This document shows positions 13,535 through 48,361 of a stretch of DNA of 64,000 nt, one piece after another. Under the pieces are notes generated by a model, which was not told the origin of the DNA, did no database searches, and worked only from the letters and a program-made list of their open reading frames with translations. The DNA comes from Piromyces finnis finn (Eukaryota > Fungi > Neocallimastigomycota): contig MCFH01000010.1 of the NCBI GenBank assembly GCA_002104945.1, positions 1 through 64,000 on the forward strand, written 5' to 3'. Position 1 is the stretch's first letter, and each line of letters starts with the position of its first letter. A program made the translations under genes and the position numbers.

Positions 13535-16500
13535 TTATTCTTCCTTAGTTTCATTTTCCTTGGTTGGTTTGTATTTTTTGAAAATTTGTATTTTTCTATT
13601 TTGGTATTTCATTTTTTTTTTAAAAGCTAAAAATTCAGTCACCTCAGATACATTAGCGATAGCTTTTTCAGAATCAGGGATAGTCATAATATCTGGAATG
13701 GTCATGTTACTTATATCTCTTTTCAATGCTCTTTCTTTAATACTATCATTGGTTCTAACAAATGGTAAATAATAAGATAAAGTATAGATAATGGTGGCAA
13801 TTCTACAAAAGTTAGTGGAAAGGATTTGATAAAATATTGGAAATACAACGCAAACTTCAAAAGGTAATTTAATTTTTGGGTTATTTCTTGCGATGATTAA
13901 ATTAAAGATATCTAAGCTAATGAGTGAAATGGCAATGCAAATGCAAACAATCATTAGTGCTGGTAAATAAGAATGCATTAAAAACATAAATACTAATAGC
14001 ACAAGAAAGGCGTAATCGTTTAAGATGGAAATAATAAAATCAAAACAAAATAATTTAGCTGTAAGAGTAGCTCGATGATTCCAACGACATTTATGGAGCA
14101 AACAATAAAGGAATTTAAAAAGAAAACGATGACGTGCTGGTTCCCAATAAGCAACACGTTGACGTGACAATGAATATTGACCACAATCGCAATCTTTCAT
14201 ATTTTCTCCTAGAAAATGTGGAAGATATTCTTTTAAGTGGAAATAGCATCTTGGTACAAGAGTATCTATGATAACATGTGCTATTTCAATTTTATAATTA
14301 CCATCATGTAATTCATTTGGATCACAAAATTGAGGTTTACCATACATGGTATGAAGACGAAGACCAAGTTGTAAATCATCTCCACGGAAAACTGTATCAT
14401 GACGATAAAGACACTCCAATAGGAATGGGGTACTCCAAGTACTCATAGCCCCACTTGGGAATACTACTGTACCAATATCCTTATGTACCTTTTTACTGTA
14501 CATTGAAATAATATATTCAAGATTTTGAAATGCTGAAACTATACCTTCACGACGATTACTTGCAATAATAGGATAGGCTAATGCTTTTACATTTTGATCC
14601 TTTTTAAAGTAGGATAAAATTTCTTCTTCAACCCAATTTTCCGGAATTAATACATCATCATCGATAATTGAAATGTACTTGATATCAATACCCGACCAAA
14701 ACAAATTATTTATTAGACAAAATTGAGCTAAAGTTTTAGAACCTTCATTTAAATTTGCATAAATAATATTTAATCCACAATAATTAGGATGTGTACATCT
14801 AAAGTGATGACTATAACGATCTACAATTTCCTTCATTTTTTGTTTTTCACTTGGAGAGGAACCATTTTCAGCTATGAAAATTGACATTGGCGTAGTAATT
14901 TTCAATAAATTTTCTAAAGTTGCTGGCAACACATCTGAACTATTATGACATACAATAAGAAAAGCATGATTAATACTTTTATACATGGATACAATTTTAG
15001 ATTGTTTATCAGAATAAGAAAAAGCGTTTTTTCTTCTGATATACTCTTTTTGAAATGATATGTTTTCACCATAATTTTTACAACTGAGTTTTTCGTTTAT
15101 TGAATTAGATGCCTCTGATATATCATCCACGTCAGAATGATTGGATTTATTTTTATTTCCATGAACAATGTCAATTTCTATGACATTTCCTATTTCTTCA
15201 TTTGGTATTCCGTCGTTACCCAAATTAATGTTGATGAATGAATTATTTGTGTCTGTGCTATTATGTTTGTTATAGTTAATACCCTTATCCCCATTCGAAT
15301 CCCTATCATGAGTGGAATAGTTATTGGCACTATCTGAATTATTATTGAAAATGATTGTATTATTGGATGCACTACTATTGTCATAAGTATCACTATATAG
15401 GGTAAAACCATCGTCTTCTTCATCATTAATAATGGTTGATGAACTATCCATTTCATTATAAATAGCTAATGATTTCTTATTAAGAGAAGGCCATTTTACA
15501 AAAGGTGCGCCTAATAAAATCATAAAACTTTCTCTATTAAGTAAAAGCCAACATATAATATTAAAGGTTATAAAGGGTATGCTGAAAGTTGCATAATTAT
15601 TAATGATATAATTATATATTTTTCGACAGAGAACTTTGTAATAACTAAACTTTAGATTGGATCCAATTAAAAAATAGGATATTATAATCATGATCACAAG
15701 TTCAAATAAAGCAACCAACCAAAGCTTGAAAAAAGTAAAAGGAAAAAGTCTTGTTTTTTTATTGGAAAAAAAGTACCAAACAAAAGGATTAATGAAAACA
15801 CCGTATAAAAGATGAATAAAGATGATTATGAATGATATTAAGAAAGCATTTGTAAAAATAGAGTAGATACTGAATAAATTAATATTACGATTAGATTTAA
15901 TAATTTCATCTCGCCTTTTTTTAATAAATATTTTCAAAGAGGCATAATCCTTTTCTATATTTGACATTTTATTTATTTGATTATTATTCTTATCAAGGAT
16001 AGGTTCCAGTGAACCGTCCCATTTTAAATCTGCATGAACCATATTGAAAATACTATCCATTCTATCTAAAAATAAGGTAGTTCCAAAAAAATTATTTACT
16101 ATATAATTTATATAATCTCTAGTGTTATGTTTTTCACTTGAATAATTCATTAAATTATCAAATATTGGTCTTCTCGTATCTTGTTTTCCTTTTCCTATAA
16201 AACGAAATTCCTCAAATTCTGTATAGGTATAATTTTTACTCCAATCATTTAATGGTGAAGAAAAATATCCTTCATGATAATTCCATTGGTTTTTTGTCTA
16301 TCGAGTTAAGAAAAAAAAATTTTAAATATTAATTGGTATGTTATCTTTTTTTTTTTTTTAAATAATAACCATTTTATATCTATCTATCTATATATACTAT
16401 ATATAATATTTCATAAAAGATATAACTACTTACTTTATCATAATATAAAAAATAATTGGTTCCATTATATAAATAGCCATGCTGATTATTTAAAATGTAA

Positions 16501-17699
16501 TCTATAGTCATTATTTTTAAAAATGAATCATAATTAAAGTTTTTTTTTAATTGGTCCAAGGAATTAAAATTTTCAGTCATATAGAATAATTTAGCAAGAT
16601 CATTTTTGGAATGAAAAGTTTCAGGAGATTCAATTCCTTGATACCAATAATTTGCATAACTATCTATATTTTCATTAATTAACAGTTTTGGGAATGTTTC
16701 AATTAAATCAAATTCACCATTGTATTTCATTGGAGAAAAGTGACTATTCATTTGGCCATACATTTCAGTAGTGTTAAATTCATTTTTAAAATAATCAATA
16801 TTTGGATTTTCTTTGATTAAATAAAAACCTATAGGGTTATTATTAAAATAAACTCTGGTAAATCCCACTTGAGCAGATGGTACATCCATAACATTACAGA
16901 TATCGGTATACATTTTATGACGAAGCATAAGATTATCAGAAGAAGTAGATACTAATTGAATACTAGTTTTATTAAACAGATTATAATATAATTTATCTGT
17001 GGGAGATGTTTGTGGTTGGGTTAAACTGTACTCTTTATAGGAGAGAAAATAAGAAGTTTTTTTAGGGTTATGATTCTTTTGAAAATAATATTTATTGGAA
17101 TAGTAGGTAGTAAAATAAATATCGGTATTTATATTATCTGCCAATGCATTTATTTCCAATAATAAATTTTCAAACTTTCCCACCGAATATGGAGTAATAA
17201 TAGTAGCACTTACGTTTAATGATGGACTATTTTGTGAATTGGTGTAATGAGCATTTTCTAAATCCTTATAGCCGGAAATGTCACCATTTAAATAAATTGT
17301 TGATATAAAATTATCAGAAAACAATTCTGAATACTTGTTTTGATTTCTGGTTATTTGGTTTCCTACTACCGTAGAAAGATCTGGATGATTATAAATTGAA
17401 TCATTTCTATTGAAAAATTCATTTAACGGTTGGTTAGAATTCATATTCGATGGTTGAGCCAATCTTTTAAAATTTTCTTCTTTTATGATTTTATTTTTAT
17501 CAGTGATACTATAAGAAACATAACTATATGTTTCCTTTTTATCTAATTCATATTCTCCTCTCCAAATAGGATAATCTGTATCATCTAAATCTACTATTTT
17601 ATTATTAATTTTCAGACCTACTTTTGTTGTATTTCTATTCACCGGGAACACTACACTAAATTGATGAACCTCTAATTTTTTATATAACAAATATAACAT
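13535..17699 (-). CDS. CotH-like (pseudo)kinase domain fused to a multi-pass family 2 glycosyltransferase, about 1340 aa, exons 17699..16434 and 16297..13535
   Basis: A phase-0 intron at 16433..16298 (GTAAGT donor, TAG acceptor) joins NYFLYYDK to TKNQWNYHEGYF. The CotH C-lobe (RRPIFDNL...FLDRMDSIFNMVHADLKWDGSL...LKIFIKKR) is in the same open frame as 3 TM helices and the GT2 motifs (CHNSSDVL, AENG, IIDDDVL, FQNLEY, SGA, GDDLQLG, RQRVAYW), followed by more TM helices. The true 5' end and signal-peptide exon were not found. Confidence 0.82.
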
Positions 17700-18688
17700 T
17701 TATATAAATATGTTATAATGTTATAAGTCAATAGGTAAAAATATATTATAAATGTATATTATTATTATGATATTATGATACATGATTATTAATAACAAAA
17801 TTTTACAGCTAAAAAAATTATAATTATAATATAAATAAAAATTAAAGAATATATATATATATTCTTTAAATACTAACTTGAATAAGCATTTGTGAAAAGA
17901 ATTATTAATTCAAATAAATAAGTAACCCTATATATAAAATTCTTCTTTTTCAACATTTTTATTTTACTAATAATAATAATGTATATAAAGACTATTAAGT
18001 AAGTATATCAAGTATATTATTATTTAGTGTTAATACTATAAAGTATTGCTATTTTTGAATAAATAAAAAAAAACAAAAACACTTGATAAACCTTTTTATT
18101 TTTCTTTATTTTTTATATGGGATTTTCAACCAATAAACCTTGAGAAATAAATAAATAAATATTTATTTTATTTTATTTAAATCATCCATTGAATAATTAT
18201 TCCTATTTAAATGAATTTAAATGGGTATTTAAATATATAAAAAATATTAAAATTAAAAATAAATTAAATTTATGAATTTTTTTTTTTAATACCAAAAAAA
18301 TATTTTTTAATAGTAATACTAATGATATTATTTAATATTAAGCAAAAATAAAAGGTAATACTATTTTAATAAGAAATATCATATTTTACTATTTTATATT
18401 CATTCTTTTAATATTACAATTTTATTTTACTTTTTTTTAAAAAAAGCTTTTTTTTTCCTTATTGAATAATCTTCTATTTTTTGATAGCAAACTTTTGGGT
18501 TACTTGACCAATCAAACAAAAAAAAAAATTTAATATTCCTTCTTTTGTATTTTTATAACTCTTGGTGTATTTTTTTTTTTTCTTTTTGGATGCTTTTATT
18601 TCATTTATAAATATATTTTTATATTGACGCTCTTTAACATCGTTTTATACTTTTAATATTTTTTTTTTAAAAAAAATCTTATTTAAAG

Positions 18689-19847
18689 ATGAATATAAAA
18701 TTTTTAATAGCGGTTTTTCTTTTTCTATTCCTGTTGCCTTTTTCTGTGGATAGTTTAAATTCCTGTCGAAAACTGAAAAATCACTTGTGTCCTTCATGCG
18801 GTAAAGAAGACTATCAATGTGAAACCAATGAAAAGGGTGAGATAGATAGATTGTATGTAATATGAAACAATACAATGCTTTAAACTATTTTTATCAAGTT
18901 TTATAGCTATATTATTAATATAATATAATTTGATAATTTGTATATATTCATAAAAATTAATGTATAATAAATATATATTATAGACATATTAATAATCAAG
19001 ATTTTAGTGGTGGTATTCCAGATAAGATTTTCGAAATAACTTCTATAACATCATTGTAAATAATACTTTTTTTTTTCTATTTGAAAAACTTATTAAAATA
19101 ACCTGTACTAACTTTTTATTATTTATAAAAATCAAATGTGTCTATGTCTTTAAAAATAATAAATTTATATATATATATATTTATAGATATTTACTAAATG
19201 ACAAAATTTTTACACTTTCGAATCAAATTAGTAATCTAAAAAATCTTTTAAGACTGTAAAATTTATACCTTTTAATATAAAATATATCACTTAAAACAAT
19301 TTTTTTTATGAAAAAATTTAATTTATAATAATACTAAAAATTATAATATTTTAAATTCACCTTAACTATTTTATTTTATATGATTAATACAGAGATGTTA
19401 GAAAAAATAATTTGAAAACTATTCCTTCAACCATTAGAAATCTTAGTAAACTTAAATACTTGTAATTTTTAAAAATTTTAAAAAGAATTCACATAAATAA
19501 GCTCTTATATTTTTTTTAAATAAAAAAAGCCAAAAAAATTAATTTATATATTTTTACTAACTTCTTATTTCCATTTATCTATAGAAAACTAAGTAATAAT
19601 CCTATAACAGAACTTCCAGAAGAAATTGGAAATTTAAAGGAACTTAGATCATTGTAAATAAAAAATATAAAAGGATTAAAAAGAAAACTTTTTTTTGATA
19701 TTAATTTAAATCCCTCCCTTTTTTTTTAATTGATTTTTTATTTCTATACAAAGATATTTAACAAATTGTAAATTGAAAAAACTGCCATCATCCATTACTC
19801 AACTTTCTAATCTACAAGATTTGTGAGTACTTCTAAAAATTAAAAGA

Positions 19848-19883
<36 letters not shown>

Positions 19884-22495
19884 AATAATTGTATTTTTTA
19901 TATAAATTTTTATTTTAATTTAATAATAGAAAACTTGAAAATAATGAATTATCAGCTATTTCAGAAGAAATTAAAAATATTAGAAATAAAAAACAATTGT
20001 AAGAGTTATTAAAATATATTTAAATATGGTTATAAAAGTTAAAATAATAAATAATTCTTTATTTAACTTTTTTTTTCATAAAGAGTTTTAGATAACAAAT
20101 CGATTGTTGAATCCTCAATTACACATAATGAAACTGATTTTATGTAAGTTAATTTAAAATAAAATTATTAAAATGGTTTTAATTAAAAAAAAATATTGAT
20201 ATCACTATGAAAGTTAACTAATATAGAATGAATCAATTTATTTATTAATAATATTAAAAAAATTTTAACAGGTCCTATAAAATAACTAGTTTGGTTAGAA
20301 AAAAAAATTTATCATTTTATAAGGATGAAGGCGTCTCTTATATTGCCAAAACTAATGGTAGATATCTTTCAGTATATGACGGCTCTACTTTCAAAGATAT
20401 TTATATTCAAGGTGTAAATATTGGATTAGGTTTACCAAATTATTTTCCCGAAGAAACTGGAATTGCTTATGATCAATATTATGATTGGTTTAATAAAATT
20501 GCGGAAATGAATGCTAATTCCATTAGAGTTTATACCATACAATCACCTGAGTTCTATAAAGCCTTTTATAATTATAATAAAAACAATAAGCATAAACCAA
20601 TCTATTTATTTCAGGGTACATGGTATAATGAAGATCGTTGGTTAGAAACTCAAAATGCATTTGATTCAGAGCTACTTTCTAATCTTTATCAAGACACAAG
20701 AGACTTAATAGATATAATCCATGGAAATTCAATTTTACCGAAATTGCCAGGAAGAGCATCAGGTATATATTCATTTGATATATCTCCTTGGTGTATTGGT
20801 TGGATTTTAGGTGTTGAATCGAGTAAACAATTTGTAAATACGACAAATATTTGTAATCCAGATAAAACTCATTATAAAGGGGAATACATTTCAGCCAATA
20901 ATATACAGCCTTTTGAAGTTTTCTGGGCCATGACTGCTGATTATACAGTTTCCTACGAAATGACGAATTATAAAACTCAAAGACCTATTAGTTTCTCCAA
21001 TTGGCTTACAGCCGATGTCATGCGACATCCTAGTGAAACAATGGAAGATGAAGATACCGTTACACTAGATATTCAACGACTTACCCAAGAAGATGCCTTT
21101 AAATGTGGATTTTTCGCTTCTTATCATGTTTATCCGTATTATCCAAATTTTATGTGGACACAAAAAAATTATATTGAACATAAAAATGATGATGGCAAAA
21201 TAGACCCGTACGAAGCGTATTTACAAGATTTGAAATCAGTTCATTTCGATAACATTCCCCTTCTTGTAGCAGAATTTGGAATACCATCTTCTCGTGGAAT
21301 AACCCATCAAAATCCTATTACCGGTTATAATCAAGGAAAAGTTGATGAAAAAACACAAGGACATATGCTTGTTGAAATGGCAAAAAGTATTAAAGCTAAT
21401 AATTACACTGGTTGTTTAATTTTTTCATGGCAAGATGAATGGTTTAAGCGTACTTGGAATACTATGGATAATACAAATGAAACCAGAAGAGCGTATTGGG
21501 ATGATGTTCAAACAAATGAACAAAACTTTGGTATACTTGATTTTGTTTCCTATACCGATGACCATAAGATTATGATACTCGATGGCAAAACAGATGACTG
21601 GACCTCCAATGATAAATTTACTGAAACAAGGAATATCAAGATGTCAGTTAAAAAGGATGCCGCCTATATTTATATTTTACTTGAAGCAAATACTATGGTT
21701 GATTTAACAAAGGATAGAGTATTGATATCTTTTGATGTTACTCCGAAGTCCGGTTCTCACATCTATACCTCCCATGATGGTAAAGATATTTTTAATTTTT
21801 CCGAAGCTGTTGATTTTGTGCTTGAATTAAACGGACGAAATGATACAGAAATATTTACCCATGAATATTATGACAAGTTTGTCTATTCCTATTATCAGTA
21901 TGAAGAAGTGAAAATCAAAGGATTAAAGCCTGCCACTTCACGTAAAAGTTCAGTGTTTAATTCGATTAAACTTTTAAATGAAATAGAACTTCTTCTTCCT
22001 GATAGAAATGAAACGATCAATACACTCTATGATATTACTGGTAAGCTTTTATTTGGAAGTACGGATAAAGCATCTCCAGATTATTCAACAATATCGGATT
22101 TCTATTTAACCCCATCTATTGCTGAAATAAGAATTGCATATGGTTTACTTAATTTTAGAGATCCATCATCTTTAGCAATTGAAGATGATTTCTATGCTCT
22201 TGATAAGAATGTTGATTTAGAAATAGATTCAATTAAAATAGGACTTACTGAAGGCAATAACACCATATTCAAAACCTTCTCATGGGATAAATGGGATACT
22301 GTTGCTTATCAAGAAAGGTTAAAAGATTCCTATTATATTTTACAAGGCTATTTTGCAGAAGAAGAAAATTCCAATCATTCCTATAAGAAAATTATAATAC
22401 TATCTATACTAATGATTATTATACTATTGTTATTATTCTTACTATTTTTTTTTTTCAAAAGAAAAAATATTATTAAAAAAAATATACAACCTTAA
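18689..22495 (+). CDS. Signal peptide - 6 LRR - putative TIM-barrel glycoside hydrolase (clan GH-A-like) - probable beta-sandwich - C-terminal TM; 9 exons, about 954 aa
   Basis: Exons 18689-18852, 18984-19055, 19187-19255, 19393-19461, 19585-19653, 19754-19822, 19930-19998, 20084-20143 and 20272-22495 all join with phase-2 GT-AG introns. The 69-72 nt exons each encode one LRR (e.g. LSNNPITELPEEIGNLKELRSL). The last exon has QGVNIG, MNANSIRVYT, WILGVES, SYHVYPYYP, VAEFGIPSSRG, FSWQDEWFK, then LDGKTDDW and a hydrophobic TM followed by KRK. Confidence 0.82.
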
Positions 22496-25850: not shown

Positions 25851-27278
25851 ATGAAATTAAATATTTCTAGTATTATTGCTACAGCTTTATTAGCTTGTGC
25901 TGGTATTGAAGCCAAGTTAACAGAATCACAAAAGTCAGAATTATTATCACTTCACAAAAGTGCTAGAAGTGCCGTTCATGCTTCAAATATGAAATCAATT
26001 TCATGGGATAGTAGTCTTGCTGCTGATGCTCAAGTAATTATAATAATAATATTTATTAATAAAAATAATATTAATATTTTATATTATTTTATCCTTTTAA
26101 TTAAAAAGGAATACTCATCACTTTGCAAAGGTATGGTTCATTCTGGTGTTGGTGGTGAAAATTTAGCTGGTAGTACTACTGGTGATGTTTCAAGAATGTT
26201 CAATAATTGGATGAAAGAAAAATCAGGTTTTGATAGATCTGGTTATAGATCAAGCTTTTTAGGAGTTTCTTATGGAGGTGAAGATATTGGTCATTATTCT
26301 CAAATTGTATGGGCAGAAAATACTAAAGTTGGTTGTGGTTTAACATATTGTGAAAACTTTTCAGCAAAATACCTTTTAGTATGTAGATACGGAACCGGTA
26401 ATATATTAAAACAAGAAGTTTATGCTAAAGGTTCTGGATCTGATCATGATGATGAATCCAAAAAAACAACTTCGACTGAAAGAAAGACAACAACTACTAC
26501 CAAAAAAACTACTACAACTACAACTCATCATCATACCACTACAACCACTGTTAAACCAACTACCACAAAGGAACAAAAACCAACTAATGAAAGTGAACCA
26601 AGTACATCTCATGATGATGAAAAGAAAGAAAATGACACCACTACTCAAGAAACATCACAAGAAACTACTATTCCAACACTTGATTCAAATGGTATTGTAG
26701 AAGGTAATAGCACAGTTATTAATACAAATACTACCATTACTACTGATAATAATAATAATGAAAACTCAGTTCCAATTGAAATAAACAATGAAAAAACTGT
26801 TAGTCCTGATGGAACTGTAGAAACAAAAAATATTAATGACAATTACAAAAAGGATGGTATTATTGATGAAGTTGGTCCATCTGGTTATGATGATGGCACA
26901 GGTACTATCATTACAGGTGTTGCATTATCAGGTTCTGTTATTGGTGCTGCAGCTGCTTTTGTTTTCTATAAGAAGAACCCAAAGCAATATCGTCAACTTG
27001 CTAAAAATATGAAAACTATTCAAAGAGGTATTACTAAAAGAGCCAATACAGTTAAACATAGTGCCTCTGCTGTTACTAGAAAGTTTACAACCAAAAGACA
27101 AAATAGTAGTTCTAGAATTCAAAGAAGAGTTCCAAATCAATTAGATTCATCTGATTGTAATATTAACACTTCATCTGATTGTAGTATTGATAATATGCCA
27201 ATGATGACTGAAATGGCTGATTTACCAACAGAAAATGTTAATTACAGATCAGAATTAGCACAAAACCTTGAAAATTAA
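25851..27278 (+). CDS. CAP/SCP/PR-1 domain type-I membrane protein (CAP1)
   Basis: Signal peptide, LHKSAR, GENL, GHYSQIVW, VGCG and LVCRYG motifs, a Thr-rich stalk, TM GVALSGSVIGAAAAFVFY and a basic tail. A 75-nt in-frame intron lies at 26034..26108. Confidence 0.9.
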   Translation: MKLNISSIIATALLACAGIEAKLTESQKSELLSLHKSARSAVHASNMKSISWDSSLAADAQVIIIIIFINKNNINILYYFILLIKKEYSSLCKGMVHSGVGGENLAGSTTGDVSRMFNNWMKEKSGFDRSGYRSSFLGVSYGGEDIGHYSQIVWAENTKVGCGLTYCENFSAKYLLVCRYGTGNILKQEVYAKGSGSDHDDESKKTTSTERKTTTTTKKTTTTTTHHHTTTTTVKPTTTKEQKPTNESEPSTSHDDEKKENDTTTQETSQETTIPTLDSNGIVEGNSTVINTNTTITTDNNNNENSVPIEINNEKTVSPDGTVETKNINDNYKKDGIIDEVGPSGYDDGTGTIITGVALSGSVIGAAAAFVFYKKNPKQYRQLAKNMKTIQRGITKRANTVKHSASAVTRKFTTKRQNSSSRIQRRVPNQLDSSDCNINTSSDCSIDNMPMMTEMADLPTENVNYRSELAQNLEN

Positions 27279-46591: not shown

Positions 46592-48361
46592 ATGAAACTA
46601 AATATATCAACTTACTTGTTAATTGCTGCATCATTATTCACTAGTATAAATACCAAATTAACCGAAAATGAAAGAAAAATATTATTAAGTCTTCATAAAT
46701 GTAATGAGGTATATCTAATGATAAGGGTTAGACTAGAAAATCATTAAGGTTAGATTAATGAAAATTTCATAATTATATTTTTATAACCAATCATTAAGTA
46801 ATTAATTCACTTATCAAATTGTATTAAAAAAAAAAAAAATAATTTTCATGTATAAAAGAGAGAATAAGAAAGATAAAATAGTTCTTTAGTGTTTTTATTA
46901 ATAATTAATAAAAATTAGTTTTTTTTTTTGTTTCGTCTTTAGTTTGATAATACACTGACCTAGCGAGTTAGTCGTATTATAATAATAAATTTAATAAATA
47001 AACATTATTAAAAAAAATACATATATTTGATACATTAGAGTGTGTGTGTTTATTATTATAATATTTCGTTACAATAAAATTGCTAGAAATTCTGTTGGTG
47101 CTTCTGATATGAAAAAAATTTCATGGAGTGATAAACTTGAAAATGATGCACAAGTATGTATTTAATTTTCAAATTAAAAAGAAAAGAAATATATCTTTTT
47201 GAATTCATTATTTTATACATTATTTATAATAAAAAAAAAAGTTATTTTTATATATAATATTGTTTCTTCTATCTTTTTTTCATTTTTAATAATTATAATA
47301 TATATGTGTGTTATTAATACTTATTTATTAATTTTATGTTAAAATTAAAAAAGAAATATGTAGATGGATGTCCCGGATTAAATCACTCAGATAGAGATTC
47401 AAGAGATGGTCACGGTGAAAATATTTCTTTTGGTAGTGGAAGTATTGAATCATTATTTAATCTTTGGACAGATGAAAAAAATAACTTTTTAAAATCAAAT
47501 TATGCTAGTAATTTTAAAGGTATTGTTTTTAATGGAAAACAAATAGGTCATTATAGTCAAGTTGTTTGGGCTGAAAATACTCAAGTAGGTTGTGGTTTGG
47601 CTGATTGTAATGGCTCTAAAAATTTAGTATGTAGATATGGAAATGGTAATAAAATTGGTGAAAAGGTTTACAGCATTTCAATAGAAAATAAAGAAGAAGA
47701 TCCGAAAATAGAAACAAAACATGAATCAAAATTAGAAACAAAAGTTGAAATAAAATCAACTACTACTATCAAAAGAACTACCACTACTATGATTAAAAAG
47801 AAAACTACAACTACTACAACTACCATAGATGTCACTATCACAAAACCTGTTGTTTCCGCCACTAACATTGAAAATGATCTTAATGATTCTTCTAATAAAC
47901 TTGCATATATTGCTACAGAACTTCCAGTAGTTACTAACACTACTATTACTCTAACAACTAATAAAACAAATATTGTTAACCAAGTTGTTTCTGAAAAACC
48001 AAAGAAATCTGAAAAAACTAATAATGTTAAAATTTCTAGCCATCCTTCAAATAATTCTTATAAAGAAATACAAGTTAATGAAAATGAAGGTGATGGTGGT
48101 ATTGTTATTACTGGTGTAGCTCTTACTGGTTCAGTTATTGGTGCTGCAGCTGCTTTTGCTTTTGTTAAAAAGAATCCAAGGCAATATGAAGAACTCAAGA
48201 GAAATATTTCCAAAAAAGCCACTAATGTTAAACGTGGTGCAACTATTCTTACTAGAAAATTAACAACAAAGAAAGTTACTCCACCTTCAACTCATAATAA
48301 TTCTGCTAATGATTATGAGTTTAACTATAGAGCTACTTTTGCTGATTCAATGGTTGTATAG
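46592..48361 (+). pseudogene. CAP/PR-1 membrane protein (CAP2) disrupted in exon 1 by a solo LTR
   Basis: The signal peptide exon (MKLNIST...LLSLHK) resumes as IARNSVGASDM after the insertion. Intron at 47154..47353. Exon 2 encodes GENI, GHYSQVVW, a stalk, TM and tail. Confidence 0.85.
46700..47073. mobile_element. 374-bp solo LTR in CAP2 exon 1
   Basis: Ends TGTAATG...TTTCGTTACA with an ATAAA duplication (46695-46699 and 47074-47078); excision restores CAT AAA ATT GCT AGA. Confidence 0.87.

Follow-up and report, generated by a model that had tools for sequence, protein, structure and literature searches.

In a 64,000-nucleotide stretch of the Piromyces finnis genome (contig MCFH01000010.1, positions 1 to 64,000 of the forward strand; called the window here), two divergently transcribed genes encode chimeric membrane proteins, a putative polysaccharide synthase with a CotH ectodomain (gene A) and a putative glycosidase with a leucine-rich repeat (LRR) ectodomain (gene B). 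In the preferred interpretation, both are plasma-membrane proteins acting on one extracellular glycan as a functional synthase-glycosidase module, to which a probability of about 0.45, slightly below even odds, is assigned. Counted in its favour are the descent of the glycosidase from synthase-type bacterial exopolysaccharide (EPS) systems, a synthase of the same type, a fitting topology and the linkage of both genes in a second genus.

According to this interpretation, the cytosolic glycosyltransferase family 2 (GT2) domain of gene A, which resembles IcaA, hyaluronan synthase (HAS), NodC and chitin synthase (CHS), would polymerise a UDP-sugar, possibly an N-acetylhexosamine (HexNAc), and its transmembrane bundle would extrude the chain beside the protein's own CotH ectodomain. 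On the outer surface of this membrane, gene B would act as a retaining glycosidase or transglycosylase of clan GH-A and would trim, release or cross-link the nascent polymer, as BcsZ, PgaB and PssZ do in bacterial EPS systems. Its core would have been captured once from an EPS locus of Lachnospiraceae; a eukaryotic signal peptide and six exon-sized LRRs would have replaced the signal anchor, and a C-terminal transmembrane segment would have been added. Structural models and hydropathy place the glycoside hydrolase (GH) domain on the side of the shared membrane to which the polymer would be extruded. We infer that gene B acts on the product of gene A, that the sugar is of the kind named and that CotH and LRR serve as tethering or recognition modules.

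Should the pair be functional, anaerobic gut fungi would possess an undescribed extracellular polysaccharide, and a horizontally acquired bacterial EPS-processing enzyme would have been wired to a native eukaryotic synthase. The wall and adhesion biology of these fungi is poorly known, yet it governs the colonisation of plant fibre. In the literature on horizontal gene transfer in Neocallimastigomycota, no mention was found of the pair, of a CotH-GT2 fusion or of the GH family.

Gene A and the layout of the locus

Both proteins are 99–100% identical to P. finnis proteins, namely BCR36DRAFT_347596 (gene A) and BCR36DRAFT_9650 (gene B). The region is strongly AT-rich, with 22–35% GC in the coding parts and 9–20% in the remainder. 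The two divergent chimeric membrane genes of the original prediction were confirmed, gene A by Pfam matches to CotH and GT2 and gene B as a nine-exon gene encoding LRRs and a GH domain. The shared spacer, placed there at about 1 kb (17700–18688), was too long because the first exon and first intron of gene A had been counted within it; from start codon to start codon it measures 732 bp (17957–18688).

Gene A lies on the minus strand and consists of three exons (open reading frames, ORFs, 16380–17699 and 13535–16150), the spliced coding sequence of which is in frame and encodes 1359 amino acids. From the N-terminus, the product comprises a signal peptide, the CotH ectodomain, three transmembrane helices, a disordered linker, a processive GT2 domain and a C-terminal transmembrane bundle. 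Its features and the adjoining spacer are as follows.

17957..18688, no strand: divergent intergenic spacer between both start codons, 732 bp, 14–21% GC
17878..17956, minus: exon 1, start codon and signal peptide (26 codons plus 1 nt), donor GTTAGT; from sequence reading, the in-frame coding sequence and the match to the N-terminus of NCBI protein P0121
16434..17671, minus: exon 2, CotH ectodomain, Pfam match at about 16434–17063 (PF08757, E 3e-10; orthologues have a precomputed PF08757 hit)
13535..16297, minus: exon 3, end of the ectodomain, transmembrane cluster, N/S/D-rich linker, GT2 catalytic domain, C-terminal transmembrane bundle and tail; from the ORF, the splice acceptor and the words of sequencing run X1
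15524..15877, minus: N-terminal transmembrane cluster of about three helices (hydropathy scan, model helices)
14351..14965, minus: GT2 catalytic domain (PF13641; motif columns invariant in the 37-sequence family alignment)
14855–14872, 14651–14665 and 14369–14386, minus: DNGS-like motif AENGSS, DxD motif (IDDDV) and GDD motif (RGDD, the catalytic-base motif)
14144..14161, minus: QRVAYW, a variant of the QxxRW motif of processive GT2 synthases
13754..14053, minus: C-terminal transmembrane bundle, putative translocation channel helices (hydropathy; model helices 594–698, predicted local distance difference test (pLDDT) 82–96 by 10-residue block)

This gene model agrees with the NCBI model P0121 (BCR36DRAFT_347596) except for one extra NCBI intron in the low-complexity linker, which deletes about 47 amino acids. 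The intron was rejected and the continuous ORF of exon 3 retained because the window has no GT donor at this place and 0.99 of the words sampled from exon 3 are present in X1, a data set that appears to be RNA.

CotH (PF08757) was identified in the ORF of exon 2 with an E-value of 3e-10 and 40.5 bits (cut-off 23.8), covering profile positions 12–200 of 322, while a Pfam scan of the whole annotated P0121 did not list CotH at E up to 0.01. A solved CotH structure to which the ectodomain could be aligned with a view to atypical-kinase catalytic residues was found neither by a single-sequence search nor with a profile of seven fungal ectodomains. The GT2 domain in exon 3 matches PF13641 (E 1e-11). 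A cleaved signal peptide orients CotH outward and the GT2 domain to the cytosol, and the latter placement also follows from an outside N-terminus taken together with the N-terminal transmembrane cluster. The linker following this cluster (about 135 residues) is rich in N, S and D and disordered.

In the alignment of 37 family members, N330-G331-S332, the DDD triplet (D398–D400) and G491-x-D493 are invariant, the last reading GED in the consensus and GDD in gene A. The family consensus QRxRSW, with invariant Q, R and W, is one residue longer than QxxRW, and the QRVAYW of gene A is devoid of the second R. The AlphaFold model has a pLDDT of 78.7, low in the linker only, and its transmembrane helices are mostly confident. 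Foldseek against the PDB returned as the top 36 matches HAS (Xenopus and Chlorella-virus), chitin synthase and BcsA chains together with one untitled membrane-integrated glycosyltransferase. Among Swiss-Prot models, IcaA ranked first (TM-score by hit 0.65–0.69), followed by HAS, NodC and chitin synthase. The C-terminal transmembrane region aligns to those of HAS, CHS and BcsA. No sequence match was obtained in NCBIfam or the PDB. On account of PF13641, the conserved motifs and a model similar to HAS, CHS, BcsA and IcaA including the transmembrane regions, gene A very probably encodes a processive, membrane-translocating synthase, and the predicted polymer synthase is thereby borne out as a membrane-embedded processive GT2 at the level of the model. 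With IcaA/PgaC, HAS, NodC and the chitin synthases, its best structural matches, it shares the GT-A domain, the transmembrane bundle and the D, DxD and ED-type motifs; it differs from them in its low sequence identity (12–18%), in having QRxxxW instead of QxxRW and in the added N-terminal CotH domain and long disordered linker.

Relatives of the GT2 part were found only in Neocallimastigomycota, chytrids, Capsaspora, Barthelona and unnamed metagenomic proteins, by word-based as well as exhaustive searches. Those of Neocallimastigomycota are 57–81% identical and many of them carry CotH, whereas those of the chytrids Spizellomyces, Gaertneriomyces, Powellomyces and Caulochytrium (approximately 30–40% identity) show the same core of three transmembrane helices, GT2 and transmembrane bundle without CotH. 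The family comprises 375 clusters at E up to 0.001 and is frequently part of proteins of 1000–3000 amino acids. Gene A is a member of a eukaryotic, so far uncharacterised family of IcaA/HAS-like synthases present in chytrids, Capsaspora and others, a family that exists regardless of any pairing with gene B. Its closest structural kin all transfer N-acetylglucosamine, and the polymer of gene A is possibly HexNAc-based. In Anaeromyces robustus (MCFG01000305, L089:25002-25155), the CotH-GT2 paralogue P0282 is followed downstream, at a distance of about 10 kb, by the start of a gene encoding a Polysacc_deac_1 protein (CE4 deacetylase); this gene would be of interest with a HexNAc-based polymer, and such genes are common in fungi.

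Anaerobic fungi possess a greatly enlarged set of CotH domains, the source of which was probably bacterial (PMC11291939, PMC6712302). The CotH proteins of cellulosomes and of Mucorales share with gene A a PF08757 CotH domain outside the cell, which in gene A is fused to a multi-pass GT2 synthase and in the others is combined with dockerins or a glycosylphosphatidylinositol (GPI) signal. Stand-alone CotH genes are located directly upstream of CotH-GT2 paralogues in Neocallimastix californiae and P. finnis (L005:809-6019, L006:4057-6026, L008:5032-6765); they are 23–25% identical to the fused CotH. On A. robustus MCFG01000067 (L004:22365-23976), a gene combining LRR and CotH lies 8.4 kb downstream of the second LRR-GH gene of this fungus. 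LRR and CotH ectodomains seem, from such arrangements, to be shuffled among surface proteins of anaerobic fungi.

The putative glycosidase of gene B and its bacterial relatives

Gene B, on the plus strand, consists of nine exons and encodes 954 amino acids. All eight introns are of the GT..AG type and 85–137 nt long. The product is composed of a signal peptide, a Cys cap, six LRRs of one exon each, a clan GH-A barrel, a beta-sandwich, a transmembrane segment and a 12-residue tail.

18689..18852, plus: exon 1, signal peptide (18689–18754) and Cys-rich LRR N-cap; N-terminal alignment with A. robustus P0004 and P0006
18984..19998, plus: six LRR exons with one repeat each (18984–19055, 19187–19255, 19393–19461, 19585–19653, 19754–19822, 19930–19998)
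20084..20143, plus: linker exon, 60 nt
20272..22495, plus: last exon, intronless, 2224 nt, with GH-A barrel, beta-sandwich, transmembrane segment and tail; bacterial origin
20390..21562, plus: (beta/alpha)8 clan GH-A catalytic barrel (model, structural matches)
20816–20818 and 21272–21274, plus: putative acid/base E182 and putative nucleophile E334
21590..22321, plus: beta-sandwich region, possibly CBM9-like (a lead only, from model secondary structure and CBM9 among the weaker Atlas neighbours with scores of 0.79–0.85)
22391..22456, plus: C-terminal transmembrane anchor, followed by the 12-residue cytoplasmic tail

The six repeats, of 23–24 residues and the form LxxLxLxxNxL, were read directly from the spliced product; in the A. 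robustus orthologue P0004, on which the profile scan was run, LRR_8 (E 1e-17) and LRR_14 (E 3e-23) were detected. The LRR exons measure 72 nt once and 69 nt five times, are in a single phase and are separated by introns of 100–137 nt, a layout that would permit gain and loss of repeats by exon duplication. The N-terminal 215 amino acids align along their length to the annotated 'L domain-like' LRR-GH proteins P0004 and P0006 of A. robustus. The NCBI model of P. finnis (P0001, BCR36DRAFT_9650, 759 amino acids) starts at the last exon and is devoid of the signal peptide, the Cys cap and all six LRR exons, so that, whatever the relation to gene A, the public model of gene B is incomplete. The C-terminal tails differ as well, P0001 reading …FFFSKEKILLKK… and the window …FFFFKRKNIIKKNIQP, as though an indel towards the 3' end of the coding sequence distinguished the two assemblies.

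The core of gene B, the 740 residues of the last exon, has no match in Pfam or NCBIfam, and phmmer against PDB sequences gave only chance hits at E up to 10. Its model is of high quality (pLDDT 89.3, predicted template modelling score 0.88) and shows a barrel at about residues 40–430, a beta-sandwich at about 440–683 and a terminal helix. Foldseek retrieved clan GH-A enzymes only, GH157 first and then GH2, GH5 and GH72. The match to GH157 (PDB 9g4n, an endo-beta-1,3-glucanase of Labilibaculum antarcticum) reached an E-value of 4e-12 in Foldseek and, in VIA-align, a Z-score of 32.7 with a root mean square deviation of 2.4 Å over 317 residues, compared to a Z-score of about 28 for GH2. With 12–14% identity to the structural matches, the relation to GH157 is one of fold and not of family membership by sequence. 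Gene B and these families share a (beta/alpha)8 barrel that carries one Glu where strand 4 ends and another where strand 7 ends; gene B differs in the I or V before the acid/base Glu, the added beta-sandwich and the membrane anchor.

E182 lies just after strand 4 (174–179) and E334 within strand 7 (330–335), and both are invariant in 30 out of 30 sequences; their catalytic assignment is based on position in the predicted model and not on residue-level superposition. In the same alignment of fungal and bacterial sequences, R85, H150, N243/W244, H285, Y287 and W386 are also invariant, a set which we take to resemble the signature set of GH5-type barrels. In clan GH-A, Asn is usual directly before the acid/base Glu; here, position 181 is occupied by I (24 sequences), V (5) or M (1), and the Asn-Glu motif is missing. 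Gene B is accordingly regarded as a putative retaining glycosidase or transglycosylase of clan GH-A, from a family without a match in Pfam, NCBIfam or solved structures. The extracellular glycosidase foreseen for this gene thus received support from the modelled barrel and from both invariant catalytic Glu.

A sensing role, which had also been proposed, received little support. Gene B could mainly be a receptor-like sensor, whose LRRs and GH-like barrel pass a signal into the cell on binding a ligand, be it a glycan or a partner protein, the pair then being a sensing module. Gene B does resemble receptor-like proteins in its Cys-capped array of extracellular LRRs and its single transmembrane pass; however, the cytoplasmic tail comprises 12 residues and no signalling domain, and the invariance of both catalytic Glu and of R85, H150, N243, H285, Y287 and W386 in fungi and bacteria argues for an enzyme over a binding-only pseudoenzyme. 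This alternative is therefore considered improbable. Equally improbable is a wall-remodelling transglycosylase acting on standard fungal glucan or chitin, similar to GH72 (Gas/Gel) or GH17 enzymes and unlinked to gene A. The beta-1,3-glucanosyltransferases Gas1 and Gel1 of GH72 and the GH157 endo-beta-1,3-glucanase are among the structural matches, and membrane or GPI anchoring is typical of wall enzymes of the GH72/GH17 type. Nevertheless, the GH72 matches are weak (TM-score by query 0.26–0.28) and no better than those to GH5 or GH2, and the bacterial family is encountered in GT2-containing EPS loci and not in the context of beta-glucan use.

Relatives of the gene B core are numerous, with 4905 proteins at E up to 0.001 among 8000 candidates scored. 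Those of Bacillota have 700–780 amino acids and are 41–51% identical over more than 90% of the length. In NCBI and UniRef, the bacterial relatives bear the name 'family 2 glycosyl transferase', as had been stated in the original prediction. An assignment of the core to GT2 was rejected; since the fold is a GH-A barrel and no GT2 profile of Pfam or NCBIfam is hit, the label is a misannotation. Independent of the pairing, this very large bacterial family consists of clan GH-A barrels and is a candidate for a new GH family tied to loci of PgaC/IcaA-like and XrtG-associated GT2 proteins. Bacillus subtilis YdaN and YdaL, in strain 168 presumably reviewed Swiss-Prot entries, were likewise rejected as relatives, as no Swiss-Prot AlphaFold model shares the whole fold and the best are mannanases with a TM-score of 0.3. 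The idea originated from the designation of YdaN as 'putative glycosyltransferase' (PMC5422440).

A maximum likelihood tree of 89 core sequences (quick search) unites the seven fungal members in a single clade with a support of 100 in the Shimodaira-Hasegawa-like approximate likelihood ratio test, nested in a clade of Lachnospiraceae (97 and 100) that includes metagenome-assembled genomes from goat, sheep and water-deer rumen. One fungal clade nested in this manner indicates a single horizontal transfer from Lachnospiraceae into anaerobic fungi. The bacterial homologues end before the C-terminal transmembrane segment of gene B and carry an N-terminal signal anchor or lipobox instead. Comparison of the sequences implies that after the transfer this anchor or lipobox was exchanged for the signal peptide and the LRR exons and that the C-terminal transmembrane segment with its 12-residue tail was gained. 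The part of bacterial origin is still intronless, while each LRR has its own exon. A metagenome scan for further fungal loci yielded bacterial contigs only, with identities of 43% or below.

The nearness of the bacterial homologues to GT2 genes, also part of the original prediction, was recovered to a large extent. A GT2 gene is located within 8 kb of the GH-A gene in 67 out of 82 bacterial genome loci, and a HEAT-repeat gene in 50 of them. In metagenome loci, GT2 was found in 52 out of 80 and in 22 of the 27 in which both flanks extend to at least 5 kb, with a median gap of 1.1 kb between GT2 and GH. The usual gene orders are HEAT, GT2, (x), GH or GH, HEAT, GT2. Given GT2 neighbours in about 80% of the genome loci and of the metagenome loci with both flanks, the family is, by gene neighbourhood, a regular component of synthase-dependent EPS loci. 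PgaC_IcaA is the best NCBIfam hit for the partner GT2 of the HEAT type and the second-best for that of the XrtG type, in both cases below threshold. In donor-like loci of Lachnospiraceae (L002:4718-11487; also L009 and L012), membrane proteins related to PTPS, small PTPS proteins, an EpsH-type exosortase and a TIGR03111 GT2 are encoded. This GT2 scores 618 bits (cut-off 364) with TIGR03111, 'XrtG-associated glycosyltransferase', and the GH-A protein appears from this context to be a component of XrtG-type exosortase systems for which Pfam and NCBIfam have no model. In an Atlas search, the GH-A fold was found fused to arrays of tetratricopeptide repeats in Gemmatimonadota and Acidobacteriota and to tails of the type IX secretion system in Bacteroidota. 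The locus of Bacillus sp. RAR_GA_16 (L056:2710-13403) encodes a GGDEF-receiver protein, a HEAT protein, GT2, a 1115-amino acid ORF with an N-terminal extension and GH-A, a small ORF and a hybrid histidine kinase; its gene content suggests an EPS operon controlled by cyclic di-GMP (c-di-GMP), for which no characterised counterpart was found.

In bacterial BcsA/BcsZ, PgaC/PgaB, Listeria PssC/PssZ and B. subtilis YdaM/YdaJ, a membrane GT2 synthase is likewise encoded beside an outward-facing glycoside hydrolase, and the bacterial relatives of gene B are situated in EPS loci of this kind, some of them with genes for c-di-GMP, two-component or XrtG exosortase proteins. In contrast, the P. finnis pair is eukaryotic; its genes are spliced and have a promoter each, the synthase is of eukaryotic and the hydrolase of bacterial descent, and additional CotH and LRR ectodomains are present. 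The GH fold family of gene B also differs from GH8 (BcsZ, PssZ, YdaJ) and GH153 (PgaB).

Linkage of both genes and alternative interpretations

Linkage in a second genus was observed in A. robustus. On MCFG01000214, a GT2 gene (1628-amino acid product) precedes an LRR-GH gene of the same strand, the distance from its 3' end being 9.3 kb, with an ORF for a reverse transcriptase similar to those of long interspersed nuclear elements in the gap. The C-terminus of the linked GT2 is the closest to gene A among the three A. robustus paralogues (68% compared to 65% and 64%). In a tblastx comparison of the whole window with this locus, nothing else was shared.

Expression was assessed by sampling words of stretches of the window in three data sets guessed to be RNA. 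These hold 0.69, 0.53 and 0.51 of the words of 16300–22299, of which exons make up about 0.66 and gene B alone could account for at most 0.45. For exon 3 of gene A, the corresponding values are 0.99, 0.75 and 0.82. The same material appears to contain transcripts of both genes, because the former values exceed the maximum of gene B and those for exon 3 range from 0.75 to 0.99.

Several observations weigh against a module. The RNA nature of the three data sets is a guess. The fungal GT2 is only 22–23% identical to the bacterial partner GT2s in pairwise BLASTP, and tblastn of the fungal GT2 in 162 bacterial loci gave no match. At profile level, the bacterial partner family and the eukaryotic family are homologous (hhalign probability 99.3%, E 1e-20, 18% identity) and at this level only. 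A joint transfer of GT2 and GH out of a single bacterial operon was therefore rejected in view of these identities, the failed tblastn search and the eukaryotic nature of the closest relatives. Since the bacterial partner did not give rise to the fungal GT2, the pairing would be a new association. Furthermore, the head-to-head layout is not conserved, the genes being divergent in P. finnis and in tandem in A. robustus. No GH-like sequence is present within 10 kb at four other CotH-GT2 paralogue loci (P. finnis, N. californiae and two of A. robustus; five fetched loci, that of N. californiae being represented in two assemblies), and the second LRR-GH gene of A. robustus has no GT2 within the same distance. 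Finally, the adjacency in two genera could simply be inherited.

Along these lines, the two genes might be neighbours by descent only, gene A making a wall or cyst-coat polymer alone and gene B targeting foreign glycans, for instance the EPS of rumen Lachnospiraceae or a polymer of plants, and thereby serving to clear biofilms, to compete or to feed. This alternative is quite conceivable, at a probability clearly short of even. It fits with the origin of the GH core from rumen-type Lachnospiraceae, whose EPS presumably is the native substrate, as well as with the lack of a relation between fungal and bacterial GT2 beyond superfamily level, the mostly unpaired paralogues of each gene, the different orientation in the two genera and the retroelement between the A. 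robustus genes. On the other hand, the linkage was kept in two genera while no other gene of the neighbourhood is shared, and the probability of an adjacency within 10 kb by chance was estimated to be of the order of 0.002 (three GT2 copies found and two GH copies, genome size of about 70 Mb). Gene B is membrane-anchored instead of secreted and has no dockerin recognised by Pfam, unlike the typical degradative enzymes of anaerobic fungi. In addition, the fungal synthase is, by its model, of the same IcaA/HAS-like structural type as the bacterial partners.

The synthase-glycosidase module remains the preferred interpretation, and the original proposal of such a module was upheld in part. The synthase and GH-A folds, the bacterial EPS context and the adjacency in A. 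robustus speak for it, whereas the head-to-head layout, the bacterial partner GT2 and the sensing function do not. Conservation of the pair in other Neocallimastigomycota was likewise observed in part: the genes are neighbours in A. robustus, although in tandem and 9.3 kb apart, and the other paralogues are unpaired. A fungal parallel is the galactosaminogalactan cluster of Aspergillus (Gtb3, Sph3, Ega3, Agd3, Uge3), in which a membrane glycosyltransferase and membrane-anchored glycoside hydrolases act on the same exopolysaccharide. Its families are different (GT4-type Gtb3, GH135, GH114, CE18), and the P. finnis pair comprises two genes only.

A more far-reaching version, which is rather unlikely, holds that gut fungi rebuilt a bacterial-style synthase-dependent EPS machine from an ancient opisthokont IcaA/HAS-like synthase and an XrtG/EPS glycosidase of Lachnospiraceae. 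By means of the acquired CotH and LRR ectodomains, a new surface glycan, possibly based on HexNAc, would then be secreted and remodelled in connection with contact to plant fibre or rumen bacteria, and the bacterial relatives would represent a large, misannotated and unclassified family of EPS-processing GHs.

Remainder of the window

Outside the pair, the 64-kb window contains a phosducin-like gene, two CAP-family genes and copia and gypsy elements; further polysaccharide genes, including any for a deacetylase or epimerase, were not found in it. The two ORFs for CAP (cysteine-rich secretory protein) family members (25851–27278 and 47336–48361) flank a block of copia/gypsy retroelements (about 28–46 kb) downstream of gene B.

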